Below are positions 14,948 through 45,214 of a stretch of 64,000 nt of DNA, in pieces (positions within the stretch are counted from its first letter, which is position 1; each line of letters begins with the position of its first letter). The translations under genes were made by a program, and so were the position numbers. The stretch is taken from positions 21,824,001 to 21,888,000 of the forward strand of contig NC_134469.1 in NCBI RefSeq assembly GCF_964194025.1, given 5' to 3'. The notes under the pieces were generated by a model. It did no database searches, was not told the origin of the DNA, and saw only the letters and a program-made list of their open reading frames with translations. The DNA is from Convolutriloba macropyga (taxonomy: Eukaryota).

Positions 14948-15307
14948 TCCTAAATGTCGCAAACAATTTCTGTCTTTCCTCAGAAGCATCTCCAGATCTG
15001 GGACGTCACAACCATCATAATAGCGTTGTCCTCTTCTACACGAATATCGGCCTCCTCCTGAAGATTGCCACATGTTTGGACTCCCACTTGGGTTCCATTC
15101 GTCCGTAAATGCATAGAGCAGAAAAATAATAACTGCACTTATAATAAGGATAGTGAAGAAAGTGGGTGCAAACTCGTACCTCGAAACATCGTCTTTCCTC
15201 AACAATGTTGCTTTAAAATCATCAGCAAGGTGGTAACTGTAAATATTAAAATGATATCCAGCGTAATATGAGAACAAAATGGAAGGACATACATCACTAA
15301 TATCCAT
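14948..15307 (-). CDS. Probable first coding exon of the LRR gene, with a transmembrane helix
   Basis: ATG at 15307 (MDISD...), hydrophobic stretch FFTILIISAVIIFLLYAF, donor GGA|GTGGGT in phase 0 matching the 14682 acceptor. The ORF tail past the donor runs into AT-rich intron-like sequence. Confidence 0.55.
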
Positions 15308-16049
15308 TGAATCTGTAATATACACTCTATGAAGAGGGAGGCGCTACTGGACACCAAACAATGAGGCTCGGTAATGTGCATTTGCACATAATGTTCCGAC
15401 CCCGCTCATCCAAATTTTTTACTTAATGGTCAACCAAATGAAATAGGATATTTCCAAAAATTCACATGCTGGTCATTGGGCGTTTGAATAAAGAAAAATT
15501 GCTAAAAACTAAGCCACCAAATGAAATAAGCAATGCCACATTAGAACCCATGAGACCTGCAATTAAAGAGACTAAGCTTTCAACAAGGAGGCTCAGTAAT
15601 GAGGAGGAGACTCTCATCCTCGTTTTTGGCTTAATTGTCTAACAAATCAGGAAGGGATAGAAAACTTCCAAAAATTCAAGTATTTCTCAAAAACAACGAG
15701 TGTATGAATCAAAACTCCGTCAAAATCATTCAATGGAATTTTAAAAAATGCCGCTTTAGAGGGCCGTGGAGATTTGTCATTACTAAGAATATGAGTCAAC
15801 ACGAACAACAAAATCAAATAACAAAAACATTAATAACTTCCAAAACACGATGTCTATTTGTAGAACAACTTAATAACATAGTCTAAATAGCTTCGGATAA
15901 AACCTAAACTAAAAAAATAACCAGTTCATTGTTCATCACTAGATATGGAACCAATCCTTAATGGGACTTGAAAACAAAAAAAAAACAAAAGGCTAACTTA
16001 AAAAATACGCTCTAAATTTCTTTAAATTGGTTTCAAAGTAATGAAAACC

Positions 16050-17700
16050 ATTAGATATGAACTGAAATCATTAAATACGTTTGTAATACGAGCATATATA
16101 ACTCAATTAGATAAGACATTGGGACCTGTCATTATTAAGATTTTTTCATTCGAGTACAAAAAAAACACAAAAAAGAAAATTTGCACTAAGAATAAGAAAA
16201 GTTTGGTTGCTCGTTTCCTGAATGTCAATAAAGTAATATGTGACCACTCATTAATGACACTAACAGGTAGACAATAAAAGAGCAGAGTTAAAAACAACCT
16301 TTATTTTTTTCGCAAACAACCTTATCAAATTTTTTTTTTCGCAGAAACCAGTGTCGAAGCCGTCAAAACTATTTAAAAAAACTCACTCTACAGATTAGAT
16401 AAGTTAAATTTCGCCTCCCTTCTATGCCGGCAACGTGATATGTGACCTGTAATTAACAAGATTAGTTAGTTAAAAATTACTTTTTTTGAACAATTACTTT
16501 CAAAGTTATTCAAACAATCAGCAATAAATTCAAATTATTAAACAGGTTCACTCATTCCTCAAAAAGAAGCATATGAGACTTATTATAAATAAGAAAAAGT
16601 CATACCTTAACGCAAATAACGTCAAATAAAGACAAAAACTTAAAAAAATTGAAAAATCGGTGTCATACACGTTATAACCATAATCAATTAGCTGAAAGCA
16701 TTAGATATGTTCAACTGCGCTTTTTTGACGCCAATAATGTGATATGAGACTTGTATTAAACGAAAAAGGTAATAAATGAAAATAGACGAAAAAGAGCAGA
16801 GAATGCAAAGTCAAAGAATAGTTAAAGTTTTTGAAAACAATAATTTTTGAAGTCATGAAACCATCAGCTCTCAATTCAAATGTTAAAACAGGTTCCTTCA
16901 TTCCTACAACGGAAACCATTGAGAATCATCGTTAATCAGAATACGTTAAACTCGAACAGACCTCAAAATCCAAAAATAAGGTATTTTTTTGGCAAAAACC
17001 AGCGTCGAAGCCGTTAAACACATAACCTACTAAAAATTCACTTTATTTAATTGCACTTTCCTTCAATGCCAAAAAAGTGTTAACAGACGGGTTATAAATA
17101 TAACTGGTTAACAGAAAGACAAAAAAGATGCAAAGCAAAAAAGAACTTCTTTTAAAACAATTATTTTCAAAGTCATGAAAAAGTATAAGATAAATTGGAA
17201 ATATTTGAACGTGGTTTTTATACCCGCAATGAAGCCGGTGAGACCTGCTACTAAGCAGAATTTATCATACGTTCAAAAAACTTCAAAAACAGACAAAAAA
17301 CAACTTTTGCGAAACCCGTTGTGAAGCTATTAAAACCATTATCAGTGCACTACCAGTTATCAACAAATGCAACTCTTTTTGATGCTAAAACGTGATATGT
17401 TACCTATGATTAATAAGACTAGGTGACAAATAGACAAACAACAACAGCTGAAAAAAACTTTTAAAAAATTCTTTTAAACTTGAAAAAATTATATCTAAAG
17501 TCATGAAAACAATCAGCTAAAAACAAATATCAGTAAATAGGCTCGTGTGCTTTTCCATGACATGCCACTGAAAGCTCTGATAATTTAGAAATTTACATAC
17601 AATCACAACAAAAGTGCAATTAAAGACAAAATGAACAACATTCCATTAAATTCTTCTAAAAATAATCCATTAAACTCTGAACCGTAAAACTATAACCCAT
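16050..17700. repeat. Old degenerate tandem array, period ~320-345 bp
   Basis: An AAAGTCATGAAAAC-like motif at ~16502, 16848, 17168, 17497 and an AAACCAGTGTCGAAGCC-like motif at ~16345, 16654, 16996, 17312. Confidence 0.65.
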
Positions 17701-18146
17701 TCCTTAAAAAATTATATATTTAATTGTGCCTAAAGTTTAAACACCAATGACTTGATAAGTGAGCTATCAACAACTTGAGCATGTGGCAAAACCAGAAAAA
17801 ATCTGAGAAATGGGCAATGTCCGAAAATTTTTTCGCCAAACTAGTAGCATCAACGCGAGAAGACAATTTCTTCAAACATAAATCCGTAATAGAGATTCAA
17901 CTTTAAGTAGAAGATTCATTCCTTCTGCAATGAAACTAAGCTAGAAGTTGACCACGGGAAAAATAGCGGCAAAGATCTATAATCAATTGTTTAATTTGAA
18001 AACAAATTATTTTAAAAGTCAAATCGAAAATAAGCTTTTGACTAAAGAAGTAAAAACTTTAGTTCCAATTGGACCTATCAATAGTGACCCTTGAAGTTAA
18101 ATGTTCTGTTCTGTATTCAACATAAAAAAGACAATAATTTTTTAAA

Positions 18147-19235
18147 AAGAGCCACTGATTACAATCCGGATTACTTTTGGACTTTATAATTTAACGATTA
18201 GACCAAATCTAGCCCTGCTATTACTGTTAATTTGCAAAGAACATGAAGTGGTTCCCAGTTAAATGATATAGACAATTAGTCAAAAGATTTCACTTAGAGA
18301 AAAATTATGCTGTTTGTATAATTTGAGTTATATTAGCTAAAAAACGGCAAAAGTTCAAACCAAGAAAACTTTCAAAAAAAGTTGTGAAGTAAATTAGCCC
18401 TCTCCTGAGCTGAGGCCAATTGTGGCTGAATCTTTAGGTGCTCACTTTGGGCAAATTTAAGCAAAGTTGAACAATGAAGCACATTTCTTGCAATTTTTGA
18501 TGCTAAAAAGCTGTTTTTTTTTTAAATATTTAGCAAAAATTTGAGCCAAAAATTTAGACGAAAACTTCATCAACACTCTACTACCTTTAGAAAACAAACC
18601 AAAGACACTTTTTCAAATATTTTAAACAAATTTTAGCAAAACTGCCAAAACTATACGGAAAAATTCAGGAAATTGTGAATAAAAACAACGGAAATCCGTC
18701 TATTATTCACAAAACTTTAAAGCTCCTTAACTCTCTGAAAAAAGATAATTTCTTTTCAATTCCACATTCTATGTTAAAATTATTTAATAAAAGACAGCCA
18801 CTGATTACAATCCGGATTATTTTTGGACTTTAGAATTTAAGAAATAGACCAAAGCTAGCCCTGCTATTACTGTTAATTTGTTAAGAACATGAAGAGGTTC
18901 CCAGTGTAAATGATATAGATAATTTTTCAAAAGAGTTTAGTTAGAGGAAAATCATGCTGTTTGTATAATTTAATTTATATTAGCAAAAAAATGGCAAAAA
19001 TTCAAACCCAGAAACCTTTCAAAAAAAAGTTGAGAAATAAACTAGCCCTCTCCTGAGCTGAGGCCAATTGTGGCTGCATTTTTTAGGTGTTCAATTTCGG
19101 CAAATTTAAGCAAAGTCGAATAAAGAAGCATATTTCATGCAATTTTTGATGCAAAAAGGCTGATTATTTGAAATACTTAGAAAAAATTTGAGCCAAAAAT
19201 TAGACTAAAAATTTTATCAACACTCTACTATCTTT
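18147..19235. repeat. Tandem duplication, period ~646 bp
   Basis: AGCCACTGATTACAATCCGGATTA at 18150 and 18796; TAGCCCTCTCCTGAGCTGAGGCCAATTGTGGCTG present in both copies. Confidence 0.9.
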
Positions 19236-20619
19236 TCATATCGATCGGCCAAAATTGACTGAACAAAATAAATCCCATTTGAGTATATAATTCCTCCCCC
19301 CCCCGCCTAAAATGGGTCGGAACAATTAAAAAAAATAATAGTCAGATCCACATGTAAATCCTTAGGACACCAATGAGCCAGGTCATTAACAAGATTAAGT
19401 CAAGATTACAACATAGCAACAACAGGCAAAAAACAAAGAAAATTCCAACAATTTACCAAAAAACTCAAGTGTTCAAGCCATTACAACCATAAGCTGTTCA
19501 CTTGAAAGATTATATATATTCACTTAGGCCTCACAGTACCACAAAAATTGATCAATATCAAATACCTGCAACTTTTAATGAAAACTGTGGTGTCAAAGTC
19601 ATGAGGTGTCAAACTGGTGTCAAAACCAATACAGTTATTATTGTTTCACGGGAAAATGGACGGAACTCGTCATTAATCAGACTGAACTACAAGTTAGCAA
19701 AAGGGAGAACGAGAAGTGGCGGAATTCACAAATATACTGATAATTTTGAAAACAAATAATTTCAAAAACCAAAGCTATCAACTGAGAGCATTAAATAGTT
19801 TGATCCATACCTCCATAGGAAGTAAATACAACCTTCCATTCTTCAGAATATGTCCTACAATTAGAAAAAGACCCGAAATATTGGCAGAAAAATCAATTAA
19901 AATTTGCACGAAAAATGTCAGAGCCATCAAAATATTAATCTATTCACAGAAAATAAAACTAATGTTAAATTGGTCTCTTGCCACCAGTCATAAAAGGGAC
20001 AACATGACAAGACACCAAAATATGGACAAATATTCAAATAACAAATTTTTATGAAAACTAGTGGCGTCAAAGTCATGAACCATTAGAAAAAGCATAAAAC
20101 CCTGATAGATTATTTTTTCTTTCAACAGAAAGAACGAGAGACCTGTGACTATTGAGATTAAGCCAAATCTTGACTGTTAAACTAAAAAGGCGGTATAGTT
20201 CAAAAAATTACTGATATTTTTCAAAAACAAATATATTAATGTATATTAATATAAGTCATAAGAGCTATCAAGTATCGGCTAAAATCAGTAGATAGGTTCA
20301 AATTTCAAATCTTACTCTTTTTGATGCCAATTGGACCATTGGTTAGTGGTAAAAATTGACAAGATGACAAAAAGAACGACCAAAGCAGTCAGAACAAGCA
20401 CTCTAAAACTTACGAAAACACTTGGTCGAAACCACTCGTTGCGCCTGGGTTGAAGGTTACTATAACCTGTAATAATTAAACCTAGAAATGAAATCTCACT
20501 GTCTGCAATTGACATAAAACAAAGAACGAAAAGATATAAAAAGCCACCCCAATACAATCCGAATCATTTTTGGTTGCAAAATTACATGGGACCAAAACTA
20601 GCCTTGCTACAAACAACTA

Positions 20620-22610
20620 GGCTCGGTAATGCGCGTTCACAAAGTTCCGACCCCGCTTATCTACATTTTTCACTTAATTTTCTACCAAATCATGAAGAGA
20701 TTACAAAATTAATATATTGTTCAACAAAATACAAAATGAATAAAAACAATCTAACTTAGAGGGCCGATGAGACCTCTGACCACCGTAATATGACTACCAC
20801 AAAAGACAACGATGAAAATAAAAGAATTACAAATATTAACTACGACCAAAACCCAATGTCAATTTTTCGAAAACCATCAATAACCAAATCAAAATCGCAT
20901 CAGAAAAAACTTATAATTAAGGAGATTAACCAGTACTTCATTAGAAAAAATATGGGACTTTTCCTCAGTGCGACTTGGTAACAAGTCGACACGAAATGAG
21001 CAAAAGGGCAAAGTTTAATAAAACGTTGCTTTTTTTAAAAAAAAATAAGAATTTCAAACTGATTAAAAACATTATGCATAAAATGAAATCATTGAAAGAT
21101 TTTTTTATACCTCCAAAGATAGAGCGATTGAGATCTTTCATTATCCAGGATATGTCATATCCCTAAAGACAGCAGTCAAAACGTTTAAACAAAAGAAAAA
21201 ATTTTTCAGTTCTCCCAAAAACGAGACCTTTCATTAACGCAGCTAAATAGCGAAAACGATACACAATTCTAAATTACCAAAAAAGGCGAAAATCAGAACA
21301 AAGAGGGATACCTTTGAAGAAAACAAAGGTGAAGAAAACTTCTACTTTTGAAAAATATTTATTCGAAAGTCAATAAAGCCATTAGCTATATACTGATATC
21401 AGTTATTTAGTTCATAAATAAATCTATAGTTGGCCATTGAGACCTTTTATTACCCAATATTTGGCATACGGCAACATAAATTAACAAATACAGGGCAGAA
21501 ATAAAAAACTACCGAATTTTGCAAGAGAACGGTGTCGAATCCCATAAAACCATGAGCTACGAAAACAATAAATATATTGATTTACGAATTTTGAAAAGCT
21601 TTTCTCAGTTAGATCACTAAATTATGTGATAATTCACAAAGAAACAACAAGAACTGCAAAATGTGCAACTATGCACCAATAAAAAGCCGATTAGTTTGTA
21701 TCTTTTAAGAAAGAAAGTTTGACCTGTGATTTTTGAGAATATGCTAAAAGTTGACAGAAATAAGATAAAAAATGACGAGTTCAAAAATCTCTCAAATTCT
21801 CTTAAAACAAATATATTCAATGTCATAATAGACATTAGATAACAACTGAAAGCTTTGTAGAATTTCACCTACACCTTTTGAAGAAGTCAGTTGGATCTTT
21901 GATGGGTTCGATCTAGTAATCAGACTGCAAAAAGAATAACAATTGAAGGCAAAACACAAGAATTCAGATAAAGATTACTAAAACTCTTCTTGAAAGAAAT
22001 AAAAACCATTGGGTTCTCTAAAATCAGACTATATCTACATTTGGCCACATTTTTACTTAAATGGAGGCTTTCATTAATGGAACCGTGAATTGAAAATTTT
22101 GCCAGTAATCAACAATAAAAAAAACAAAATGCTAAATATTAGAGCCAAATAGATTGTAAGAATCCATGCTGATATAAATATATCTATGATTTTAACGAGC
22201 CTCCAAAAAACCACCCAAGTGTTTCAAAAAATCTGCAATCAAACAATTCAGCAACGCTCTTTTATCTCTAACGGTTACAATAACCCTCTACCGTTGAAAA
22301 AATTTCATATATTTTATAATATTTAAGCAAAATTGAACCAAATTTTAGCAAAAATTATCAAAAATGTGAATCAAAACTGTCGAATCAAAAATTTAAACCT
22401 CGATAACTCCCTGTAAAAAACTAAAATCAAAAAATCTTTCTTATTCCATATTCTCGGATGTACATGCTTTTTAATGATACCACTAACAAATATCTACGAT
22501 GGATATATCTATCGGACAAAATTGACTGAAAAAAAATCCATTTGATTATATAGTTCCTCTCTCCCCATTAAAGTGGGGGTCGGAACAAAATGTGCACAAA
22601 TAACGGACAT
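20620..22610. mobile_element. Non-autonomous TIR element, copy 3
   Basis: Left end GGCTCGGTAATGCG..GTTCCGACCCC; right end GGGGTCGGAACAAAATGTGCA. Interior is homologous to 768-3404. Confidence 0.68.
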
Positions 22611-22899
22611 CAGTCCGGCAAAATTTTCAAAAACAATGAAAACTCGATATTCTACTCTTGACGTGCTTTCTAATGATATCATTCCCAACTTACAGCGATT
22701 GTCCAAAATTGACTGAACAAAACCAGTTAAGCATATAATTTCTGCTTTTCCGCCAACATGTGCTTACTAAAAATTTTTAGTATTGTATTTAATTAGTATT
22801 GTAATTAATTATTGGTAATTATTCATTTCGAAGCCCGAGTACTATTTGCCGTGAACGAAAACTCCTAATAGCACAGTAGAACCATCACTTACACTAACA

Positions 22900-24037
22900 T
22901 TATAAACACAAACTGAAATTTCGCCCCTATACCGTTCCGAATATCGATGAAGCTGGCCTGCAAACATCAGTAACAGTTGAATGCAAAAATGAATTTAAAA
23001 ATGAATTCCTCTAAAGTCAATAGGATTTCTGCATTTAAATTAAATTCTGTTAAAATACCGGAGTCAGAAAGCTGCAAGTATCTTGGAGTTAGTTTGGATT
23101 TTTAAAAAAAACGAAATTCATAGAGCACATTGAGGAAGCGAAGAAAAAGTTAGCAATTCAGTGCAGAAGTGTCAAAATTAAGGAATTATGTTCAAAAAAA
23201 CTGTCTTACTCCAATACTCCAATTTTATTCTTCAAATATCAAACCAATCATGCAATATGGTGTGTTGATATATGGATGTGTGACCTTCAACCTTTAGTTC
23301 TATTGCAAAAAACAATCAGACTCATTTTGTTCCGGAAATACAGAAATTGTTTCTCAATTTTTGAGAAATGCAAGGTCTTCTCTGCTCACAAAATGCATTT
23401 TTACGAACCTCTTAAATTTGTATTAAAATAAGTAAACAAAATGCACATAGATACATATCTTAATGAGTTATTTTCTTTTGAATCCCGATCAAACAATTCA
23501 AAAAGATCTTTAAAATGGTTGTTGAAAATACCAAAGTGTACACGAAAGATCGAAAGGAATTCAGAGGTGCCAAATTACTTAACATTTTATCGAAAACATT
23601 GTGTTACCATCAAACTGTTATTGTTCATTTGTCAGTCTGGTGCACAAGATCAGAGACAACTACATTTTATCGAATTATGAATGAACAAAAAATTCTTCTC
23701 CTAATTGCTACTTTGTGCATTTGAAAGACATTCCAGAACGATTAAATTTGCTGTTGTCAAGTTCTGCTAAAGGGGCAAAAAATTTGTCAAAATTTGAAAA
23801 TTCCATCAACTAAACTGATTATCTTTCACCAGAGAAATTTTTTTTTGAATATTCATATCCAAATGTAAAAAATTAAAGGGCAGTGCTCAGTGATCCAGTC
23901 GGATTCGAAAACTGTCCTCTCTGAGTGTACAATAGTTTTATGTGTAATGGCGCTTTTTGATCTTAAACTGGAATTTTTGTCATGTGTTATATGATGTTTA
24001 TTTATACTCAGATGAATTAATTCTCTCTCTCTCTCTC
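22900..24037 (+). mobile_element. 5'-truncated decayed LINE 3' end with a (TC)n tail
   Basis: CKYLGVSLD at ~23073 and QYGVLIYG at ~23253 are RT thumb/C-terminal motifs. Terminal (TC)n run at 24022-24037. Confidence 0.7.
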
Positions 24038-24593
24038 AATTGAAAGAATTTCGGAGTCCAATGTTAGTGATAATCCGCGTTACTGAATTCTGGAACTGTT
24101 AAAACATTTCTGAAATTTAGTAAGAGATAATCGCTGGAAAATATGAAAAAAACACGTTCGACAGACACCTAAAACGACTGAACCATCTGTCATGTGAAAA
24201 TATCATTTTCTGAATTTACAATTCATGCAAACTTAATCAGCTGAAGATATAGAGAAATTACTAATATATGATATGACTGAAAATTCATTTGGAATACGAA
24301 ACATGCGATACTAATGAATGGAAATTGAGAATTACTTTGGCCACTGGGCAATTTGTTGCTATGATAGAATTAGAAATAAACTTTCAAATTCTGCGCTTTC
24401 TGAAGCTATTGATAAATGTTTGGGATAAACAAAACCATTGTCAAAATAACAGAAAGCCACTCAATTTGAAAACCTGACAACATATATAGCACTTATTTAA
24501 TCAACTATAGAAATAATCTAAAAGCAATTTATGCGTTGATATGAAAAAATATGACACAAGTTTGGAAAATCAGAGCTCGTCTAATCGAGACGA

Positions 24594-25664
24594 TTACAAA
24601 AGTTTGACAAAATTAGAGTGGAACAAAGCAGCACGTAATTCAGGTTCCAATGACCGCGAATGAGGTCCAATGTACATTTGAAGTTTTGTTTTGGCAGTAC
24701 CGTAATAATATACATACGAATGAGGATTATCATCGTAACAGAAGCCTACAACACTAACACTTTTGCATAAATTTAGCGCCATTTGGATAGCGACGAAGCC
24801 TGTCGTCGCTCTGGAATTTTTGTTACCACTACCCGGTACCCTGGATATATTATACAGAGACTCTGTAATTTCTGGGTTGATAATGAGTACATTTTCAGGT
24901 CTTATAGGCAACGACAGGGGACTCGAGCGCCAGAAATGGAATACTTCATTGATACTAGAATCGACTAATTTTGCAGCCCATAGAATATCATCTGATTTGT
25001 AAGGTACTACAACTACAATCCCAGCACCAAGATATGATTCTGTATCAGCGGGTGCTGATTCCGGGTACACAACCCGAATGTCAGTTTTGGACCCTACTAT
25101 TGTCTCATACCCTTCGATAGGCGCCATATTCATACGAATTACAATTGGAAAACTATCGATAATTTTACCCAACCTCGCCCCTCTCAAACAGGCCCCCGCT
25201 CCCACCACTATACATTCTTGGCACTTGGCTTTAGCTAATACCCTGTTACTCCATGGATTGTGTAATGTCTCCATTGTCTTTCGCAAAACTTTAGCAGGAA
25301 CCTTGATTCTGCTTTCAAGCATCAAGTAGTCGTCGTGTGAACTATTCCACAAATTTGATAAAGTCGAATTGGTCAAAAATGGCTCAGCCTTGACCACATA
25401 GTCAATACTTTTGGTTTTTTCTAATTGGCCTTCAGTCACAGTATTGCACGTTGAAGATTGCATCGAGAGCACAAATGGTCTGGACTTTGGCAAGGTAGAA
25501 TTGGTTACAAGAGGAATCCTAATGACATTTCCCTTGTAGTTAAGATGCCAAAGAGGTAAACATACCATAACAAAAAGAACAATGATAAATAAAGTAGCAG
25601 GTAATTGAGAAGGTTTCGTCATCCCCACCGCAGTAGCTGAGGTTCCAGGGACAGAAGATGTCAT
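24594..25664 (-). CDS. Intronless sialyltransferase (GT29), ST3Gal-like, type II membrane protein
   Basis: N-terminal TM (LFIIVLFVMVCLPLW); sialylmotif L CIVVGAGACL...IDSFPIVIRMNMAP...VGSKT; YPESA; motif S ATTGFVAIQMALNLCKSVSVVGF; motif III YYY; motif VS HSRSLE. The first ATG is at 25664; the track start at 25673 is TTG. Confidence 0.93.
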   Translation of the reverse strand: MTSSVPGTSATAVGMTKPSQLPATLFIIVLFVMVCLPLWHLNYKGNVIRIPLVTNSTLPKSRPFVLSMQSSTCNTVTEGQLEKTKSIDYVVKAEPFLTNSTLSNLWNSSHDDYLMLESRIKVPAKVLRKTMETLHNPWSNRVLAKAKCQECIVVGAGACLRGARLGKIIDSFPIVIRMNMAPIEGYETIVGSKTDIRVVYPESAPADTESYLGAGIVVVVPYKSDDILWAAKLVDSSINEVFHFWRSSPLSLPIRPENVLIINPEITESLYNISRVPGSGNKNSRATTGFVAIQMALNLCKSVSVVGFCYDDNPHSYVYYYGTAKTKLQMYIGPHSRSLEPELRAALFHSNFVKLL

Positions 25665-26289
25665 TATGTACAAAATATACAGTCGACCCCTACCGAGACA
25701 AGTTGCAAATTTACATATAGATTAAATTTGGTTTTAAGAATGAATTTAAAGCTAACAGTAATCAAAAATGGAATTGAAAGCAAAGATTATAAATAATAAA
25801 TTGGAAGATAGAAACATCTGATGTTAGTTAGATATTTGTAAGCTAGAAAAGATGACAGAGATATTTGTTAATTGGAAAGGATGACAGCAACCGATAGACA
25901 ATAACGAGAAGCAGCCCAAGCCATACCCTTCACCCAGGGTGATTGCATGATAAACTGAAATACATTCAAGTGTTCAACACAGATACTACTCTCAAATTCA
26001 AACAGTTGCAACATAGGTTAGAACTAATTTCTTTACACCTGATAGAATATGACCATCTCATATTGAAATTTTAACAAATACCTTTATTTGCAATGATTAC
26101 TCCCATCTCTTATTAGGTTATAGAAAATCTTAAAACTGCAAAAACACGCATTAGTTTGATCTCACAGGCTAACCACAACTTTGTCACGAGGAAGAAGAAA
26201 CATATCCCATAATTCCCTCTAAACGCCGAAATCAGTTATAGTGTAATAACCACCAGCTGGTACGTAGGCTACAGGAACTGCGAATTAAT

Positions 26290-30937: not shown

Positions 30938-32989
30938 TTAATCTAAACACACTAAGTCATCATCTGAATCTTCTTGAGGATTTGCAGCGATTTTTTGGAC
31001 ATCTGCATCAGGTGACACAAGTTCTGTCTGATCAATTTTTAGCTTTTTCGCCTCTGGCTCTAGTCCTGAATTTCCACCATGGCTTTCGTTTAGCTTTCCA
31101 TCCGAATTATCGTCGTCATCGTCAAGATTTACCAGCTCCGGCCTGTTTCTAGCTGCTTCTGTTTCAACTCCATTGGCTTTAGATTCCTCACTTTTTGAGA
31201 TTCCATTGTCCACTACTGATCCATTTTGTTCATCTGTTTCCATTTTCTGACCGTTATCGTTTCCTGTTGTCCCATTAGTGGTAGCACCATCAGAACTCGA
31301 AGGTGCCTCGATGGCGTCAAGTCCCATGACCTGGAAGTTCTGTTCATCAGCCAAACTACGATCTTCCTCTGATACCTTTTCGCAATGCTGGACTATAATC
31401 ACTACCGCAAAGTTTTGGAAAAAGTCATCTGCTTTGAGCCTGGTGCCATCTTGGACTTTGAACGACTCCAATGATCTCTCGAGGTTGCCCTCGTTATCTT
31501 CCGGATCACTGGACACCAAGATGGTTCCTTTACCGTCATCGAGTTCAACGTCTGGCTCCACCATGCTTAGGGTCTTTTTCAAAACTTTTTCAAGTAGCGA
31601 CTTGATGAGAAATGTTGAGCAGTTAACTCGTAGAACAACTTCTGGTTTTGAGCTGCACACGTAGCAATTTGGGTTAGGTGAATGGAGCTTCGAAGCGACA
31701 AACAGGGTTCCGTACCTTCCACTTGGTTGCTTCTTCAGAAAAACTTGCTTGCACGATTCAAACTTACCCATAATTGCTTTCTTTGCCTCCGTGACCATAA
31801 GGCCAGCGACTATTGCGTTGGTAGTGGCAATTGCAGGGATGATGTTGCCAGCCATTGACTTCACATCAAATCTAGATTTCCCTACAATGCTGAAAATGTT
31901 GCACCGGATGTTTGCCGCAGCAGCAGTGAAATCCATTACCAAATCATCGTCTTTGTCCCAAGTGAGGTATCCCTCATCCGAAGCCTTCTTTTTTGTTTTC
32001 AACTCATTGATGCTTGACCCAAGAACTTTGACCCAGTTTTCCATATTCCACATTTCATTATCAACTAAACCCTGCGGCTTTTCCCATAATTCCCCGGGAT
32101 CACTAAACTCCAGTGGCTTGGGAGGTGTTCGCTTAAGCCACAAATTCTTCATGGTCAACAGATATTGCACATCTTTGACAAACAATTTTGTGATCAACTC
32201 TAACGGATCGTAATCAACAGACGTAGCCCAATCTCGAGTGGAAATTTTGTTCTCATTGCCGTAATCTTTCATCAACTCAGTATTTGAAGTATCTTGATTT
32301 TCTTTAGCTTCTTGGTCATTGCTATCTGGCGACACCTCGTTGTCTTCGTCGGGTGCAGTTTCCCCAAACAGCTGGTTAAACAATTGTTTCGCCCACACAA
32401 TGCAATGAATAGGTTCACTAGGGGTATTTCTTACAGTACATGTAGGATATGTCTTCTCTTTGGCCGGTTTAGCCACACATTCGTAGCATTCTGACTGGCC
32501 TTTTTTGATGACGTATGTCTGTCCAAAGAATCCAGAAGTTCCACTTTCGATCAGAGCAACATCAGCCGCTAGGCACAATCTGTTCACGTGATTCCGTGCA
32601 GCTCTGTTGTCCAATGCGTTGATGACAATTGCAAATTGTTTGAAAAAAGAAACGTTGTACTTATCACTGATTATGCTTTCGTGGTATGTAGTAATATCAC
32701 AGTTAGGGTTAAACTTCAAAGCAGACTCTTTGGCAATGACACATTTTGGCTGACCAACATGTTGGCGCTGGAATAGAAATTGTCGATTCAAATTGCTGAC
32801 TTCAATCGTGTCCAAATCAAACATGTGAATTTTCGTGAAGCCAGATAGAACTAAATTTTTGAGAACCTCACAACCTACGCCACCCGCACCGACCAGCAGC
32901 ACGGAACACGCTGAAATCTTTTCAGCTTCATTTTCAATTGCAATCCTGCGCTCTTTCAGCTGCGCAATCATGGATGCTTTGTCAAACAT
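30938..32989 (-). CDS. UBA2: SUMO-activating enzyme subunit 2, intronless, 683 aa
   Basis: GAGGVG nucleotide-binding loop, DLDTIEVSNLNRQFLF, Zn pairs CYEC/CYVC, catalytic PTCTVRNTPSEPIHCIVWAK, AGNIIPAIATTNA, ubiquitin-fold domain with LKADDF, acidic tail ending DDDLVCLD. Confidence 0.97.
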   Translation of the reverse strand: MFDKASMIAQLKERRIAIENEAEKISACSVLLVGAGGVGCEVLKNLVLSGFTKIHMFDLDTIEVSNLNRQFLFQRQHVGQPKCVIAKESALKFNPNCDITTYHESIISDKYNVSFFKQFAIVINALDNRAARNHVNRLCLAADVALIESGTSGFFGQTYVIKKGQSECYECVAKPAKEKTYPTCTVRNTPSEPIHCIVWAKQLFNQLFGETAPDEDNEVSPDSNDQEAKENQDTSNTELMKDYGNENKISTRDWATSVDYDPLELITKLFVKDVQYLLTMKNLWLKRTPPKPLEFSDPGELWEKPQGLVDNEMWNMENWVKVLGSSINELKTKKKASDEGYLTWDKDDDLVMDFTAAAANIRCNIFSIVGKSRFDVKSMAGNIIPAIATTNAIVAGLMVTEAKKAIMGKFESCKQVFLKKQPSGRYGTLFVASKLHSPNPNCYVCSSKPEVVLRVNCSTFLIKSLLEKVLKKTLSMVEPDVELDDGKGTILVSSDPEDNEGNLERSLESFKVQDGTRLKADDFFQNFAVVIIVQHCEKVSEEDRSLADEQNFQVMGLDAIEAPSSSDGATTNGTTGNDNGQKMETDEQNGSVVDNGISKSEESKANGVETEAARNRPELVNLDDDDDNSDGKLNESHGGNSGLEPEAKKLKIDQTELVSPDADVQKIAANPQEDSDDDLVCLD

Positions 32990-33086
32990 ATCTGAAACAC
33001 CAATAGGTATTTAATGTATTGTCAAATGAACCTTTTAAAGTCGGAATTTGATAATATAATCTACTTCTCAAGTAATCAGAATCCGA

Positions 33087-35400: not shown

Positions 35401-35546
35401 AGAATAAATTATACCAAATAAAAATTATAAAATCTATGAAAAAAACCAAGTCGACCATAATTAAGAAGCTGACACAATAAACAATTTTAGTTCCAGCGTT
35501 CTCAAAACTATAATTCTTATAATTGTGTATCTTGTAGGAAAATCAA

Positions 35547-36386
35547 TGTCACGCCCCTATTTCGTCCCTCATAGTTACGTGATGATTTTCCTTTAAATAT
35601 CTATAAATAAGTGCTATAATTTAGTTCATATTCAAATAGATCTCAAGGCCATATATAGCTAGTATTTCCATCTAGGCCTGTAACCCCTAATTTGTTTGTT
35701 TATTAAAAACCACCGCAGATTGACAGTTTACTGATAAACATATCAAGTGCCTAAAAGCCTCAATATTTACCTTTTTGAGTTCCCTTATTGGTAAATAACT
35801 TCATGAGAAACTATGTACTTGGTGAAGTAATTAATCTGATAAAGTAGGTGCTAATACGGAAATTGTATATGTACTTAACAAACATCAAGAGACGTACAAA
35901 AGCCGGAAATTGCCCAACTTGTAGATCAGTAAATATTTACAAAGGACCAATACAACTCACGGTACAGCCCTGCGGACCTACGATCACGAGAAAACCGGAG
36001 AACAACCTAGCAACCAGTCGACAATAAAAACTCAACAAAAATCTTGAAACTTCTTATCCTGTCTCTAAAAACTTCGCTATAATTTCTGAATATATAATTA
36101 AAGATTGAACTGGAAAATCTTTATAAAATTCTAAGTTAAAACAGGCTTTCTTAGAGCTTAATAACAACCAGATAAAGCACTAAAAAACAAGGCAATTAGT
36201 AGGTATATCACGCATCCGAACCGCTCAATAAAAGGCTATTAGCTAAATTTATTCAAAATATATCTACTAAAAATCGCACTGTGAAACATCTAATTAAGTC
36301 CTTGTAAAATGACAATTATTCACATTTACTGCTAATATTAACCTCAGAAACACCATGAGGAACACGCTAGAAATGAGTGCGTAACA
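35547..36386 (+). repeat. 5' LTR
   Basis: TGTCACGCCCCTA...GTAACA, a direct repeat of 39217-40064. Confidence 0.95.
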
Positions 36387-36399
36387 TGGTGACAGGAGT
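36387..36399 (+). promoter_or_regulatory. Primer-binding site, probably tRNA-Leu
   Basis: TGGTGACAGGAGT immediately follows the LTR. From memory it is one mismatch from the complement of a tRNA-Leu(CAG) 3' end (TGGTGTCAGGAGT). Confidence 0.65.
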
Positions 36400-37603
36400 T
36401 ACTAACTGATTCCCAGTTTAACGGACCGAAATTCCGATTAATTCTTTGATAAATTCGACAATTTCTTCGTTCATTTGATTCTTTTCTTTATTTCTTCCAC
36501 TTCATTACCTCAAGAATCTTCAGCTAGCATCCAGCACTCCATTTTCCGAGCAAGAGGATAATGCAGAAAGCAGTAACAAAGGAAAGAATGGGTGGAAACT
36601 GTTTGTCTTTGTGGACTAAATGCAACAAAAATTCAAAAGTGTCTGAGAGAATAACAACTGGAACAAACTCAACCACAGCCGCTACAACGGACAAAATCAT
36701 CACAGGGTATTTGCAAACGAGGATATTGTAAATGAATTTGTAAAATTACTTTCTGGTGCTTCATTTATGTCAATTTATAAAGAACATATCTTCCCTGCTA
36801 TTAACATCCATAACAAACCTCAATCAGATAGAGATCTTAACGTTGATAACATCATAACTGACTATCAAATAACATCAGAAAAAGCTAAATTACTGAAACC
36901 ATAGCCTAAACATCAAGTAAAAGAGGGCAAAACCAAAAAATTACACAGAAAAATGAAACAATTATATTTAATTCCCCATCCAGCTCCGGAGGTTAATGGA
37001 TCAAAGTGACTTCGGTCAATAGGCTGTTGCCTATCTGAGTGCAGCTTCCACAAGGCCTGTGCGGTCGTGGTCCCCACGAATTTTTCTAGACTAAATGGCA
37101 CTCTTTAATGGTGAGACTTCGGCGGCCCATACGGCTTCAACGATAACAGTCTGACGATTCGACCGGAGCTTTAGGCATAGGTTTTTAAGTAGCCCATCTT
37201 TATCATTTTCTGAGCAAATGGTTTCAGTAGTTTCTTTTTCTGATCTATTGTGCTACTCATTACACTTCTTTTTTCACTATTAACCAATTAATTGTGCTAT
37301 TTAATACTTTAGAACGAAATAAGACTGATTGAACGATAAGCGTATAATCTAAACGGGTAAAAAGCAAAATGTTGCACGCGCAAATCAACATGACACCCTT
37401 TCTGGATCAGAAACGGACAATTTTAACAGTTAATAACAGGAGCAATCGGAGTCGCAGCAATCGCAGGTGCGCAACAAGCGAATTTTCTGCAATTACACTT
37501 AAAAGGAGACGCTTTAAGATACTATCTAACCCTACCAGCGGCCACCAGACTAGTTTTTGCAGAAAGAATAACAGCTCTGAGAAATAGATTCACAAAAGAC
37601 GAC

Positions 37604-38308
37604 TTGAGAGAAATCAGAATAATAACGTTAGAGAACCAAAAGTTTAATTCGAAGACGGATATAGTGAAAAATTTCTTAGTAAAGTTAAGAACAGAAGCAA
37701 ACAAAGCATATCCACCACCTGAAATAGAAGTAGCACCAGCAGGCGGAGGTGATGCCGAAGCCCGTAGATTTGAAAGACAGCAGCAAGAGATTCTGCCCTT
37801 GAAACGTCGGAAAACGAAAAATGAACAAAATAAGCGCTTTTTTATTAAGTCTATGCCAAATTGGCTTAAGCCTAAGCTGTTAGAAAGGCCAGACACAGAT
37901 ACAATCGATCAATTATGTACCTTAGCTAGCCATCAGATTGCAATAAGAGAGATGTGTAACATAGAAGAGTACTTTGACGACGGGTTTAATGAAATAACTG
38001 AGTCCAACACTGATAAAATGTTAAAAGCAATAACTGTTATTTCATATAATCAAAAAGAACTTGAACAGAAACTTGAGCAGAGGGTAGCAGCTAAAAATGA
38101 GCCATCAGAACAAGGCCCAGTAAACATTTTCACACCACATTACCCTCAACAAACCTACAGACAAAGTTATAGTACAAATTTCCGTCCTCAAAATCAAAAT
38201 TATCAGCCAAATTACCGTCAATATCGGCCTAAATATTGTCAATTTCAGACAAACTATCGGCCTCAGCAACAGTGCGCCCCCCATTCTAATAATTACCGAG
38301 AGTTTTGA
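37604..38308 (+). pseudogene. Disrupted gag-like ORF
   Basis: 234-aa frame in the gag position: helical FLVKLRTEANKAYP...FIKSMPNWLKPKLLE, a coiled coil, then Q/N/Y/R/P-rich repeats. The 5' part is broken by stops and frameshifts. Confidence 0.7.
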
Positions 38309-39216
38309 CCACAATTTAACGCTCCTAGACAATTTCATTATAATGAACAGCCACAAACTCGGAATTATTGGACCGAACCTTCAGATAGCCCCCCATTTGT
38401 TCACCCAGCTTATGTTAATAGACCTCTGGCAAACTTCATGAAGCTAAATGGAACAAATGTACCGCTCAAATCAGTAGTTTCCGTGCCAAAACATCTTAAA
38501 GCAGTAGTGGCAAACCTCATAAAACAATTAAAGAAGCCTCCAACTGTTATCTCACCAGAAGACATGGGAACCATCAAACGACAACATCGACGAAACTCAA
38601 TGCCAGCAACATCCACAATGTCACTTAGTAAAATTGAAACCCGCGAGGAAAGTATACTTTAAGTTCTTGAAAGTCTGAAATAGTTCGAAAAGTATTATCC
38701 CATTAAGTCTCACTCTTTCCATTAAGATCTATTAAACAATGCTTTAAAATTGAAAACCAGTGCTTTCAACCATTCATTCAAACAAGTAAACCTATGCTAC
38801 ATTATTCTAGTTTAGAACCTCCATTTCATTAACATTTAACATTAACTCAGATTATCAGTGTTAATTCTATTCTTTTCTCCTCTCCTCCTTGTGTTCTAAC
38901 TCTTCTGAATCAGCCCATCTTAATCTCTTTAACGTTCTTTAACAGCCTTAATTCCAATCTTATCTTAACTTTATTCATTTTAACCTTTCTCTTAATTTGT
39001 CTTAACCTAACACTTTATTTCCTACAATTTCTTTCACTGTCTTTAACTTTAATGCTTTCGTTCAAAACACTTTTCTAAGAAAACATAAATTGGGTGGCAC
39101 CAACAAAAACATGTTTATACTCTTATATTCGTGCAGATTATATGGTTTTATAGAAAAATTGTAAAACCCAGTTCCTTCTCAAAATTTTCACGGAAAATTT
39201 TAATAAAGTCCGGTAG

Positions 39217-40064
39217 TGTCACGCCCCTACTTCGTCCCTCATAGTTACGTGATGATTTTCCTTTAAATATTCATATGAAGTGCTTTAATTTAGTTCATAT
39301 TCAAATAGATCTCAAGGCCATATATAGCCAGTATTTCCATCTAGGCCTGTAACCCATAATTTGTTTACGTTTATTTAAAACAACCGCAGATTGACAGTTT
39401 ACTGGTAAACATATCAAGTGCCTAAAAGCCTCAATATTTACCTTTTTGAGTTCCCTTATTGGTAAATAACTTCATGAGAAACTATGTACTTGGTGAAGTA
39501 ATTATTCTGATAAAGTAGGTGCTGATACGGAAATTGTATATGTACTTAACAAACATCAGGAGACGTACAAAAGCCGGAAATTGCCCAACTTGTAGATCAG
39601 TAAATATTTACGGAGGACCAATACAACTCAAGGTACAGCCCTGCGGAACTACGATCACGAGAACACCAGAGAACCAACCTATTAATCAGTCGACAATAAA
39701 AATTCAACAATAATCTTGAAACTTTTTATTCTGTCTCTAAAAACTTTGCTATAATTTCTGATTATATAATTAAAGATTGAACTGGAAAATCTTTATAAAA
39801 TTCTAAGTTAAAACAGGCTTCCTTAGAGCTTAATAACAACCAGATAAAGCACTAAAATACAAGGCAGTTAGTAGGCATATCACGCATCCGAATCGCTCAA
39901 AAAAAGGCTATTACTAGCTAAATTTATTCAGAATATATCTACTAAAAATCGCACTGGGAAACATCTTAATAAGTCCTTGTAAAATGACAATTATTCACAT
40001 TATTTAGTGCTAATATTAACCTCAGAAACATCATGAGGAACACGCTAAAAATCAGTGTGTAACA
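39217..40064 (+). repeat. 3' LTR
   Basis: TGTCACGCCCCTA...TGTAACA followed by the TSD. Confidence 0.95.
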
Positions 40065-42331
40065 ATCAAGATAATGGGACATCATTGACGGGACACTATT
40101 GCTTCTTACATGACGTACATTACGTTGTCAAGTATTGTGGAGACGAGTGACAAAAATTAAACGACGGAAAACGTGGAAATAAGTTATTTATATACTACAA
40201 AAAGGCTTACAACTTGTTCCTAACATCCAAAAACTTAACTGCCAAAAATTTAATAAAAAATAATTGAGACCAAATTATTCTTTTGAACAGTGCTATGGGT
40301 AATTGCAAAACCAAGTAGTATCGAGAGGGACATTTTTGAAATTAATCAGCAATAAGTCTTTCTTTCAATTCAATGATTAAATAATGCATCCGTAGGAAAG
40401 GATGAAGTCGAATTAAGTTACAGATACTGTGGAACTTAGAAACTCATGGTGTGGATATTAGTTAATAACTATTAATCATTACGGAATATTGTCCCAAGTT
40501 TTCACGCCTGCCCCAAAAACACATCGTGAAAAGTGAGTACACAGATATCCAATTTTGTTAATTTCAAAGTTAATTTCAACTAAATTCGTTAAGTGCAACT
40601 AGTTTCCACACACGCTTAAACTCTTAAAACCATGGTCGAGAACATAAATGACAAAGCGAGCATATTTACTATATTTTTTAATATAGGTCACGCAATGTAA
40701 TTTATCAAAGCAAGTAGAATTGATTGCAAATCAAAAACTGAACTCACAGAACTCAATAAAAGCGCTGATTCTTTTCTCGGCCCATTTAACACTTGCCCTT
40801 TACGGATTAATATCACAGTAAATCACAAGCTGTCTCGATGTAAAAAGAAATCCATTAAGAGTACAATTTTACGGATGAATCCGAGCTTCACGGTGCATTT
40901 GGACGGTGCTGAGAAAATAATTCATACCGTCCGATTAAAAGGACGTCAAATGTAAATCTTTAAGCTAGAATCACCTCATCCCATATTTATCTCCACTTAA
41001 CTGATTTTCCTAGATCAGAAAAAATAAAGCGGGTAGAAAAAAGAACAGCTCTCCTTCTGTTCACCCCGATTCGTTTATCCCCGCATATCTTAACACCATA
41101 TCATTTCATCACACTATCCTTGCACCCCAAAAATTAGTAGCAGGTATTACAAGCATGTTTTCTTATAATTAAGCGGATAATTTAATCCTACGTTGGGTTG
41201 TGAGTCTATAAAAATCGTTCCACTAGCCACTGAGGCATGACCATGCCCGCGAGACATGACCCAATGTTTATAGTACCAATGTTAATGTGCCAATAATATA
41301 AAGGATTAAAATCAGGATGAAATGATAGGAGAGTGAAAAAGTGGAACTGAACAGATAGGAGGTTCATTTTATAGCTTTTTAAAATTACTAATCTTAAAAA
41401 CTTAGCTTTAGCTCTTTCATTTCATTAATTGATGTTAGCATTTTGGTGACGCTTAAAATACATTGAGCTGAAGATCAGAAATAGTTAAGATTTTCTTTAC
41501 AACGGATTTAGCTCATACATGGAAGTCTTCATTTTTTTTAAAAAAAAAATGAAACGTAGTTTTCCATTCATTTCAAATGTTTGCATAATCGTGCCTTCAT
41601 TCCTTTTACCCCAATTTATTTATGCAATCATGCTTCTCTACCACAATTTTTCTCCGCCTCATTTAAGAACTCTTTGATTTCTCAAGCTTTCCGCGTACTT
41701 TTTGGTATTCCTTCGAAAAAGGTAAATGTACTTAACATTTGTATTAACCTAACATGTACTTAACCTAACGAAAAAGGTAAATGTACTCAATATTTCCTAT
41801 CTAGTTTCTGCAAATTAAGTTTGCTTTCAACGATTTTGGTTCAAGTTAATCAGCTTTTTTCAGGCACCTGTTTTTCAGCAATAAAGAATGTCATGTTTCC
41901 AATTCTGGGTGCTGTCAAATTTCTGTACACAAGAATCCATTTCGCATCGCTTTCTTTTAAATTTTTCGAAAAGGAATTTTCTGCATAAAGATTTTGTCGT
42001 TTTTAATTTGTGTTTCTAATAACTCCCCGTCATAATCAATTGTTCACAGTCCAGCCCATATAAGGCACTGATAAAAGAGAATTGAGAAGTCAACTATATT
42101 CATCTACCGAATACAGACAAAAAAGAACTACAAATGAAACGGATTCGCTGTTTTGGACGTCCAGTTACAAATTGTGTTATATTACAGTTTACCATGTACA
42201 AAAAGATGGGCGGTCCAAAACAGAATAGATCCAATTAATCATATCTAACATTTCTCAGCGCAACTTCATGAAACTTACAAAATATTGCACATTTTTTTGG
42301 TATTCTCTCGTACCTCAAATAGCACATCAAC

Positions 42332-44998
42332 CTACTTGGCAAATGCAGTCTGTAAAATTTCTGCTTCTTCTGTCTTGTGTCTCGTACCAATAGCCGTGGC
42401 AGGTACTGCTCTCTCCGACCTTCCAATGTAATCAAGGTTTACTCCAACTAAATTTCGAAATCGAGGTTCCACGAATGTCCAGGCACCAGAATTTCTGTGT
42501 TCTTCTTGGCACCAAACAAATTGTTCACAATTGGAATATTTGGAAATAATTGATTGCAATTCTGAGGTAGGGAATGGAACTAATTGTTCAATTCGTACAA
42601 TGGCCACGTTTTTCAATTTCTTTGTTTCTCTTTCCGCTTCCAACGAGTAAAATAACTTGCCACATACAAAAATTACCTTTGTAACGCTGGATGCCTCAAC
42701 TTTTAGATTTCCGTCGTCAAGTACTGGTTTGAAATGTGTTCCAGATGCCAGCTCACTTAAATTGGACTTAGCTTCAGGCAGTCTAATTAGCTTTTTAGGA
42801 CTAGCAACAATTAATGGTTTTCTGAAATTTCTCGCTTGCTGACGACGGAGCAAATGAAAATACTGCGCTGGAGTAGTGGGATTGACAATAAACATATTGA
42901 CTCGGTCGGAATCTATCGACGTTTCTGAACTATCTGTGAGCTGGAGAAATCTTTCCAGTCTGCAAGATGAATGCTCAGGTCCCATTCCATCAAGGCCATG
43001 AGGCAATAGCAAAACGATACCAGACTGCATACCCCATTTACTTTCCCCGGATGCTATAAAGGCGTCTATTATAATCTGCGCGCCGTTAAAAAAGTCGCCA
43101 AACTGAGCCTCCCAGACCACCAACGTTTTCGGGGAGTCAATAGATACACCGTAATCAAAGCCAAGGACTGCCTCCTCAGAAAGTATGGAGTTCGCCACAT
43201 GTAAGATCCCGCTATCGGGGGCCTCTTTTCTAATCTCGTTTAACGGTTCAATAATTTCGTTCGTTGATTGGTCCACAAGCTGGCAATGACGATGGCTAAA
43301 AGTTCCTCGTCCCACGTCTTCTCCACTGAGTCTGACGTCATGGCCTTGTATCATCAGCGATCCAAAAGCTAGCGCCTCTGCTGTAGCCCAGTCGATTCCA
43401 TCTTCTTGATTCATCATATTTATTCTTGTGCTCAAAGTTTTCACCAGCTTGGAATGCGTGTTAAAATGTTCGGGAACGGACACGGATTTAATGCCAATGT
43501 ATTTCAACGTTTGCAGCTCAAACCCAGTATCCCAAGTTGATAACTGATCCGGTGCAAAATTGCACGACTGCCACTTGTTTTGAAAAGATTCTAAAACAGG
43601 TTGGAATTTATCAACTGATTTGTATTGCTCATTCAGGTAATTTTTGAAATCTTTACATCTTTCGGTCAGCTGCATAATATATTCTGCAGGTAGTTCAGCC
43701 GAAATTTTATCAAAATATATATTTGGAGGTGATTTTTTTGAATTGATTACTTCATACATTAAGGGTTGCGTTATGGTAGCATCATCCATTTCATTGTGAC
43801 CCCATTTCCTGTAGCAGACAAGATTACAGACAATGTCTTTGCCAAAGAGTGCCCGGTACTTCAAGCACAAAATTGCCGCTTTGTAAGCTTCTTCGGGTGA
43901 GTCGCCATTAACGTGCACAATTGGACAATTAATCATTTTTGCCAAATCGCTCGCATGGCGATGGGAGAAACCTCGCTGCATTGTAAACGCCACTTGGTTG
44001 TTAGTGATCAAATGGACCGATCCTCCTACGTCGTAGCCTGGCACATAAGCCATGTTGAAGCATTCAGCAACAACCCCTTGACCAGCAAAAGCTCCATCAC
44101 CGTGAATTAGAACACTCAAAGAGCCTGGGAAATCATTTTTGTCTTTATTTTTGGAATTCACACGCATATTCTGTTTGGACCAGACCTTTCCTTGAACGAC
44201 AGGATTAACAGCTTCAAGATGCGATGGATTCGGCAATAATGTCACACTGACCCCATTTTCAAAATCTACACTTGTCCTTATATGGCTCAAAACATCATCA
44301 TCCATTACATGCATTGAGTTTTCAGGCACTCCCGATAACCCTTTCATTTTTCTGAAGAGCAGTGCGGGTGGACAGTTAAGCAGAGTCGTTAAAAGATTGT
44401 TCCTACCTCTATGGGCTATTCCAACAACTATCGCATTACTTTCGTGTTCAGATGCATTTGCGAACAAGGAATCACAGAAGGCCAACATGCTCTCTGCTCC
44501 TTCACCGCCATATCGTTTGACAGTTGGAAACTTTGCAGCCGTAAATCGGTCAAACTCTTCACCATTCATTATTACTTCAGCTATTCTTGACTTTGTTTCG
44601 CTGTTTAAGGTGGTGAGCTTTAGTTTCTCAAATTCATTAAACAACCAATTCCTTTCAAAACTATTTTCGAGGTGTCCTGCTTCTAAGGAAGAGTTTTGCG
44701 TGTATACTTCAATTACTGCAGAGGACACAGTGTCACTCGACAAAGAAGCAAATGGACTGGATACACTTTCCTCAGTTTCGTTCTCAATCACTGAAGTAGA
44801 TAACCGTAAAGGATCAAGATGAGCTTCCAGATAACCCTTATTTCGGTAAAAACGCAAAAGGTCGTCATTGGTAGTCTTTTCTTGATGCTTAGAATGCGCA
44901 TCCGTACGCTGATTACACTTTCCCGTATTGATTGAAAGGAACCTACACGATGAACTTCTGGCAGGGAGATGCCTAACAATTTTAAGTCGAACACGCAT
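42332..44998 (-). CDS. DHTKD1: 2-oxoadipate dehydrogenase E1 (mitochondrial), intronless
   Basis: Arg-rich presequence; DHTKD1-type KRYGGEGAES and EAQFGDFFNGAQ rather than OGDH-type RFGLEGCE; NPSHLEAVNP; TPP motif HGDGAFAGQG; WGHNE; PEHSSCRLERFLQ. ATG at 44998. Confidence 0.95.
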   Translation of the reverse strand: MRVRLKIVRHLPARSSSCRFLSINTGKCNQRTDAHSKHQEKTTNDDLLRFYRNKGYLEAHLDPLRLSTSVIENETEESVSSPFASLSSDTVSSAVIEVYTQNSSLEAGHLENSFERNWLFNEFEKLKLTTLNSETKSRIAEVIMNGEEFDRFTAAKFPTVKRYGGEGAESMLAFCDSLFANASEHESNAIVVGIAHRGRNNLLTTLLNCPPALLFRKMKGLSGVPENSMHVMDDDVLSHIRTSVDFENGVSVTLLPNPSHLEAVNPVVQGKVWSKQNMRVNSKNKDKNDFPGSLSVLIHGDGAFAGQGVVAECFNMAYVPGYDVGGSVHLITNNQVAFTMQRGFSHRHASDLAKMINCPIVHVNGDSPEEAYKAAILCLKYRALFGKDIVCNLVCYRKWGHNEMDDATITQPLMYEVINSKKSPPNIYFDKISAELPAEYIMQLTERCKDFKNYLNEQYKSVDKFQPVLESFQNKWQSCNFAPDQLSTWDTGFELQTLKYIGIKSVSVPEHFNTHSKLVKTLSTRINMMNQEDGIDWATAEALAFGSLMIQGHDVRLSGEDVGRGTFSHRHCQLVDQSTNEIIEPLNEIRKEAPDSGILHVANSILSEEAVLGFDYGVSIDSPKTLVVWEAQFGDFFNGAQIIIDAFIASGESKWGMQSGIVLLLPHGLDGMGPEHSSCRLERFLQLTDSSETSIDSDRVNMFIVNPTTPAQYFHLLRRQQARNFRKPLIVASPKKLIRLPEAKSNLSELASGTHFKPVLDDGNLKVEASSVTKVIFVCGKLFYSLEAERETKKLKNVAIVRIEQLVPFPTSELQSIISKYSNCEQFVWCQEEHRNSGAWTFVEPRFRNLVGVNLDYIGRSERAVPATAIGTRHKTEEAEILQTAFAK

Positions 44999-45214
44999 CA
45001 CAATACGAGGCTGCTTAATCTGCTAGCTAGATCATACTTGCTTTACACGTATAAAATGTATCCTTGTTCTTCATCTTTTCAGTTCTCAAGCATCTGAAAT
45101 TTGAAGAAACTTATGTTAATTTTGAAAAAACAACACATAACTCCAAATTGTAAAAAGTAAATGTGTACGATTTATACGATTGCACAGTCTATACGATTTC
45201 CGATCTTGAAGCGC

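Follow-up and report, generated by a model that had tools for sequence, protein, structure and literature searches.

In C. elegans, UUUCAG acceptors lie close to the AUG, the genes for spliced leader 1 (SL1) are linked to those of 5S rRNA, the leader is 22 nt long and genes within operons are spaced 100-400 bp apart. In dinoflagellates, relict leader sequences (DinoSL) upstream of genes identify leader-bearing retrocopies. The closest described system is that of the acoel S. roscoffensis, which has a published spliced leader (SL) and in which 30.2% of genes are trans-spliced according to RNA-seq (PMC9911081, Martinez et al. 2022); the supplement to that paper holds no list of the trans-spliced genes. 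Here we analyze a stretch of 64,000 nucleotides of chromosome 2 (hereafter the window) from Convolutriloba macropyga, a member of the same photosymbiotic acoel group. Its minus strand carries four genes: a DHTKD1-like gene, UBA2, a GT29 sialyltransferase gene and a leucine-rich repeat (LRR) gene. The original prediction, made from the letters alone, was that an acceptor-like AG close upstream of each ATG might reflect SL trans-splicing or an operon-like system. We find that SL trans-splicing operates in this animal and that, of the four genes, UBA2 is the most likely to receive the leader.

The genome searched comprises 1,175,981,408 bases in 4,694 scaffolds (the published assembly is txConMacr16.3, PMC13650328). 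The published S. roscoffensis leader has an exact 31-nt match in it, with 1,654 exact 31-mers genome-wide and 2,612 sites for a leader 32-mer when up to three mismatches are allowed. Units in which the leader is followed by GTAAGT form tandem arrays on contig 9, with a unit length of 1.06-1.8 kb, and every array unit also holds a 5S rRNA gene, the two kinds of gene alternating. The 106-nt SL RNA is predicted to fold into a stem-loop in which the GU donor site is paired, a U-rich, Sm-like single strand (UUUUAUUUG) and a second hairpin, the single strand thus being flanked by stem-loops. This fold has a minimum free energy of -34.4 kcal/mol, lower than that of any of 200 shuffled sequences (z = -4.8). 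A search of Rfam assigned the SL RNA itself to no family. The arrays lie at about 23.1-23.8 Mb and at 62.0 Mb of contig 9; in the individual loci, 5S rRNA genes were placed at L020:1027-1145, L020:2660-2778 and L019:1883-2001, and those of L020 are on the strand opposite to the SL RNA genes.

A donor site inside stem-loop 1 is also the structure type of the S. roscoffensis SL RNA, and the leaders of the two animals are identical over 31 nt. The interleaving of SL RNA and 5S rRNA genes is shared with nematode SL1, as is a UUUCAG-type acceptor a few nt before the start codon; the nematode leader, however, is unrelated and has 22 nt as against 31 here, and no second, operon-specific leader was seen in C. 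macropyga. Many unrelated transcripts further share the leader as their 5′ end, as judged from DNA copies in which it is followed by at least 29 distinct downstream sequences. Since the genome contains the leader together with SL RNA genes and leader-bearing retrocopies, this part of the original prediction is borne out: SL trans-splicing operates in C. macropyga, and its machinery is the same as in S. roscoffensis. The two cases differ in that trans-splicing was shown by RNA-seq in S. roscoffensis, with no operons reported (PMC9911081), whereas C. macropyga is read here from DNA alone. A literature search for Convolutriloba together with trans-splicing returned no relevant paper, and the genome paper is silent on splicing (PMC13650328).

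The dispersed DNA copies of leader-headed transcripts, mostly members of repeat families, were read as a fossil record of splice junctions, which reveals what a used acceptor looks like. An ATG lies no more than 15 nt behind the leader in 18 of 29 distinct junctions (62%), compared to 23% expected (binomial p = 1e-5), and in 16 of 26 when one family is collapsed (p = 4e-5). Seven of the 29 junctions open with TTTCAG, TTTAAG or TTCCAG. Two repeat families preserve the junction both before and after use of such a hexamer. In one, most copies read leader-CTTCAG-AGTTGAATG, while a single copy has the leader joined directly to AGTTGAATG; in the other, leader-TTTCAG-AGATGAGCC is found beside a direct junction of the leader to AGATGAGCC (SL-TTTCAG-AGATG vs. 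SL-AGATG). These before-and-after pairs show that the animal uses YTTCAG as an SL acceptor when it stands 2-6 nt ahead of an ATG.

Entire repeat families (loci L075-L080, L069-L074 and L037) invariably begin with the host leader. Two stacked leaders are present in some copies (L074, L037), and others were re-spliced at a YTTCAG right behind the first leader. These leader-headed families seem to have spread as leader-spliced RNAs. As in dinoflagellates, the genome holds many leader-headed DNA copies, some with stacked leaders; it differs from them in that the copies are mostly transposon families and in that no leader relic lies upstream of the four genes. Indeed, no relic was detected in the window at 22 or more of 31 nt on either strand, nor at up to three mismatches, and the intronless genes are therefore without a recognisable relic of retroposition.

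The four genes are real and co-oriented, as had been claimed, with Pfam domains, NCBI/RefSeq proteins and minus-strand open reading frames (ORFs) in agreement, and each of the acceptor-like motifs was recovered when the minus-strand sequence was re-read (Table 1). We compared the contexts of these motifs to those of all 1,060 ATGs on the minus strand of the window, where TTTCAG has a density of about 1 per kb. TTTCAG ending at most 5 nt upstream, as at UBA2, is seen at 0.6% of random ATGs. The corresponding values are 17% for a YAG at most 5 nt upstream (LRR gene), 8.9% for TTTCAG at most 100 nt upstream (DHTKD1) and 53% for a YAG at most 25 nt upstream (sialyltransferase). The idea of a shared signal near the ATG thus holds in part: the UBA2 context is significant, while those of the other three genes are within chance. 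Among the four sites named, only that of UBA2 is beyond chance.

Because this rare context coincides with the geometry of the fossil-proven acceptors, UBA2 is the likeliest SL site of the four. On sequence grounds, the TTTCAG that precedes the conserved ATG by 2 nt is a candidate SL acceptor that we consider probably genuine. Met1 of UBA2 lines up with the first residue of three acoel orthologues, one of them the S. roscoffensis RefSeq protein. The RefSeq protein of C. macropyga starts at Met7 (677 aa) and not at the conserved Met1 (window 32971-32989); position 7 is Met here and Ile or Val in those three acoel proteins. The Met7 start fits an RNA-based model that ends at or just inside the acceptor as leader-bearing reads get clipped, and is probably an annotation artefact of an ATG lying 2 nt behind a trans-splice site. 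It also makes a well-supported upstream exon, spliced in cis to the UBA2 AG, less likely.

A second haplotype, present in one DNA run, has TTTCAG intact together with 7 substitutions in the upstream 100 nt (33000-33085). It also carries one extra nucleotide in the spacer that separates AG and ATG (32989/32990), and its ORF call reads MFQIM; an indel at this place shows that the UBA2 spacer is untranslated. The downstream UBA2 coding region is without differences in the same run. In S. roscoffensis, the longest ORF call for UBA2 reads ...KFQIE...SFQKS-M upstream of the start. These residues, known from protein letters alone, would allow for a TTYCAR hexamer at each of two places, 6 nt and 36 nt ahead of the ATG. 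Contigs of four DNA runs from one study run unbroken through the genes, the spacers and the UBA2 acceptor, and none has a loose end at position 32991. K-mer depth (k=31) shows the sequence on either side of UBA2 to be single-copy, and the genome copy number is 1 both for UBA2 and for the 5′ region of the sialyltransferase gene. The coding regions of UBA2, DHTKD1 and the sialyltransferase lack introns. UBA2 is also called as a single ORF in contigs from three further acoel assemblies, that of S. roscoffensis among them (P0011-P0013), and the intron loss is therefore old.

Table 1. Genes, acceptor-like motifs and repeats of the window (positions counted from its first letter)
Feature	Positions	Strand	Remarks
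DHTKD1-like 2-oxoadipate dehydrogenase E1 gene	42332..44998	-	single ORF, 888 aa; Pfam E1_dh, Transket_pyr, OxoGdeHyase_C; identical 888-aa NCBI protein
UBA2/SAE2 (SUMO-activating enzyme subunit 2) gene	30938..32989	-	single ORF, 683 aa; Pfam ThiF, UAE_UbL, UBA_E1_SCCH
GT29 sialyltransferase gene	24594..25664	-	single ORF, 356 aa; Pfam Glyco_transf_29; identical 356-aa NCBI protein
LRR gene LOC142335189, first coding exon	14948..15307	-	RefSeq XP_075239688.1, 606 aa, mapped exon by exon
TTTCAG, UBA2	32992..32997	-	gtgTTTCAG, then AT spacer, then ATG 32989; 2 nt before ATG
TTACAG, LRR gene	15313..15318	-	tatTACAG, then ATTCA spacer, then ATG 15307; 5 nt before ATG
TTTCAG, DHTKD1	45094..45099	-	aaaTTTCAG, 95 nt before ATG 44998
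AAGCAG, putative alternative AG of DHTKD1	45011..45016	-	12 nt before ATG; inferred
TAG (cggTAG), sialyltransferase	25690..25692	-	25 nt before ATG 25664; weak pyrimidine tract
TTTCAG, sialyltransferase	25955..25960	-	~290 nt before ATG
High-copy short repeat, MITE- or SINE-like (miniature inverted-repeat or short interspersed element)	15352..15566		end ~38 nt upstream of LRR AG
Young high-copy 695-bp repeat, read as 5′-truncated 3′ piece of a long interspersed element (LINE)	45204..45898	+	ends 105 nt upstream of DHTKD1 TTTCAG
Long terminal repeat (LTR)-type element	35609..40001	+	~720-bp direct repeats, 94-97% alike; in DHTKD1-UBA2 spacer
LINE in LRR intron	6018..10100	+	endonuclease and reverse transcriptase ORFs by eye

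The RefSeq proteins of the other three genes start at ATG 44998 (DHTKD1), ATG 25664 (sialyltransferase) and ATG 15307 (LRR gene). The LRR gene has 8 coding exons, which extend from 15307 to about 17.3 kb past the left edge of the window. A pyrimidine tract (CCTCCCTCTTC) lies 15-25 nt upstream of its TTACAG, which may be an SL acceptor, although we hold this to be slightly on the doubtful side. The coding score of exon 1 is only mid-range, and the 144-aa ORF at 15307 has no relatives in searches of 5.8 and 1.8 billion proteins. At 11.7 kb, a strong acceptor stands before the first exon that is recognisable as LRR. We considered a start at about 11609, behind this acceptor at 11697, with the ORF at 15307 being spurious, and rejected it: XP_075239688.1 joins the exon with ATG 15307 to the LRR exons. 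The first 200 residues of the RefSeq protein (exons 1-2) likewise found no relatives in the two protein searches; they are either lineage-specific or the product of a chimeric gene model.

Directly after the DHTKD1 TTTCAG, an ATG opens an upstream ORF of 4 codons, which is followed by a second upstream ORF. The alternative AAGCAG has no upstream ATG behind it, yet its pyrimidine tract is poor. We think it unlikely for DHTKD1, and equally for the sialyltransferase, that the motifs originally named are SL acceptors; both genes could receive the leader at another AG. Two stretches of 84 bp and 51 bp within the presequence coding region of DHTKD1 (44848-44960) have matches at three or more other places in the genome (contigs 5, 10 and 12) with 84-89% identity, and in those places the two pieces lie about 150 nt apart.

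We propose that SL RNAs from the tandem arrays shared with 5S rRNA genes donate the 31-nt leader, which would be spliced, in many mRNAs, to an AG that precedes the start codon by a few bases. At UBA2, the 3′ end of the leader would be joined to AT-ATGTTTGAC, right after TTTCAG. DHTKD1, UBA2, the sialyltransferase and the LRR gene would be separate, set apart by 5-9 kb of partly transposon-derived spacer. The leader and its SL RNA genes, the kind of acceptor in use and the gene models are established here, whereas addition of the leader at any of these four places is inferred. We regard the whole of this explanation, i.e. separate genes in an animal with a working SL system and UBA2 as the gene most likely to be leader-spliced, as reasonably probable.

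Several observations weigh against it. The motif alone cannot separate a 5′ untranslated region (UTR) intron from leader addition, cis and trans acceptors being alike, and the base rate is modest, with only 30% of genes trans-spliced in S. roscoffensis (PMC9911081). The RefSeq start of UBA2 would be explained equally well if splicing used the AAAG that lies 5 nt before Met7, or if transcription began locally. Leader-headed retrocopies of DHTKD1, UBA2, the sialyltransferase or the LRR gene were found nowhere in the genome; in this search, the DHTKD1 5′ region shared just an 84-bp repeat with other places, and the LRR 5′ flank matched only the upstream high-copy repeat. These points lend themselves to the view that all four genes have ordinary 5′ ends, each made from its own nearby promoter with or without a 5′-UTR intron ending at the AG, and that none of the four mRNAs gets the leader. 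About 70% of S. roscoffensis genes are not trans-spliced (PMC9911081), three of the four motifs are within chance, and the RefSeq start at Met7 could mean that transcription of UBA2 begins within the first codons. However, a purely cis origin leaves the UBA2 context as a 0.6% event that happens to match fossil-proven acceptors, and a well-supported cis intron at the UBA2 AG should have given a RefSeq model with Met1. In addition, the repeats that the original prediction had placed close upstream of two of the genes are indeed there, ending 38 nt (LRR gene) and 105 nt (DHTKD1) before the motifs, and leave little room for a proximal promoter. We therefore rate ordinary cis 5′ ends as a serious but rather unlikely explanation. 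At the other extreme, all four named AGs would be true SL acceptors of separately transcribed genes. The presence and wide use of the SL system, the short distance from leader to ATG in most fossils and the pyrimidine tract of the LRR gene agree with this, but the DHTKD1 TTTCAG would leave 95 nt with two upstream ORFs, unlike 62% of the fossil junctions, and the sialyltransferase GGTAG combines a poor tract with a context expected at 53% of random ATGs. That all four are used is thus very unlikely.

The genes might also be the remnants of an ancient operon swollen by transposons to more than 30 kb, in which a single precursor spanning UBA2, the sialyltransferase and the LRR gene, and perhaps DHTKD1, would be cut by leader addition and polyadenylation. 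As in the operons of nematodes, tunicates and chaetognaths, we see co-oriented, unrelated and mostly housekeeping genes in a trans-splicing animal (PMC12460157), and repeats lie very near two of the acceptors. The A-skew that had been noted on the + strand is confirmed by composition over 0-30 kb, and the excess of T over A on the sense strand stays intron-like in the spacer regions (16-23 kb and 26-30 kb) before fading beyond 48 kb, which would be the trace of such a precursor. The skew is in part due to A-rich retroelements on the + strand (the LINE at 6.0-10.1 kb and the LINE-like piece at 45.2-45.9 kb); in the spacers it is unexplained, and a small probability for read-through transcription therefore remains. 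Against an operon stand the distances from each stop codon to the next acceptor, which are 9.3 kb (DHTKD1-UBA2), 5.2 kb (UBA2-sialyltransferase) and 9.3 kb (sialyltransferase-LRR gene), i.e. 20-40 times the metazoan operon criterion of <250 bp between genes (PMC12460157) and likewise far from the 100-400 bp of nematode operons. Recognised transposons account for only part of this: the 4.4-kb LTR element fills some of the DHTKD1-UBA2 gap, but without it some 4.9 kb or more would still be left, and the remaining spacer contains further dispersed repeats here and there. Each stop codon has its nearest poly(A) signal just 0.1-0.5 kb further on, the sequence flanking UBA2 is single-copy, and four genes share an orientation by chance in 1 of 8 cases. 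The operon-like system envisaged at the outset thus fails on distance; none of the usual measures would class the four genes as an operon, and a swollen ancestral one is the least probable of the explanations considered, to be entertained only as an outside chance. Most likely, they are four unrelated genes, each its own unit, that share a strand by happenstance.

For gene annotation, the UBA2 site illustrates how a start codon 2-6 nt behind a YTTCAG is easily lost in RNA-seq-based gene models, as with Met7, and a leader identical to that of S. roscoffensis is a ready tool to find true 5′ ends. SL trans-splicing in acoels is already published (PMC9911081); the window gives no case for an acoel operon, and otherwise the locus brings nothing new.

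The repeat map of the window is partial, as it relies on a small library built from retrieved genome loci; Rfam gave no match on the whole window. For the short repeat upstream of the LRR gene there were 3,620 first-look candidates, and many copies share the same end base. The 695-bp repeat upstream of DHTKD1, with 3,159 first-look candidates, has 99-100% identity to dozens among the copies listed; its ORF resembles a reverse-transcriptase tail, with no Pfam match. The ORF at 37427-38659 of the LTR-type element is gag-like by eye, also with no Pfam match. Within the LINE in the LRR intron (7438-10100), a 655-bp unit is repeated about four times in tandem with 93-98% protein identity and includes part of the reverse-transcriptase-like region. 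Tandem Repeats Finder reported nothing in the window at a score of 200 or more, the 655-bp units being beyond its period limit. Further along, a 770-bp stretch occurs twice with 97% identity, 2.4 kb apart (46727-47500 and 49173-49943), and a minus-strand ORF of 98-127 aa occurs three times (48699-49079, 51242-51535 and 55409-55789). Together these repeats have the look of a nested or tandem complex, situated just past the gene cluster, where the skew ends.

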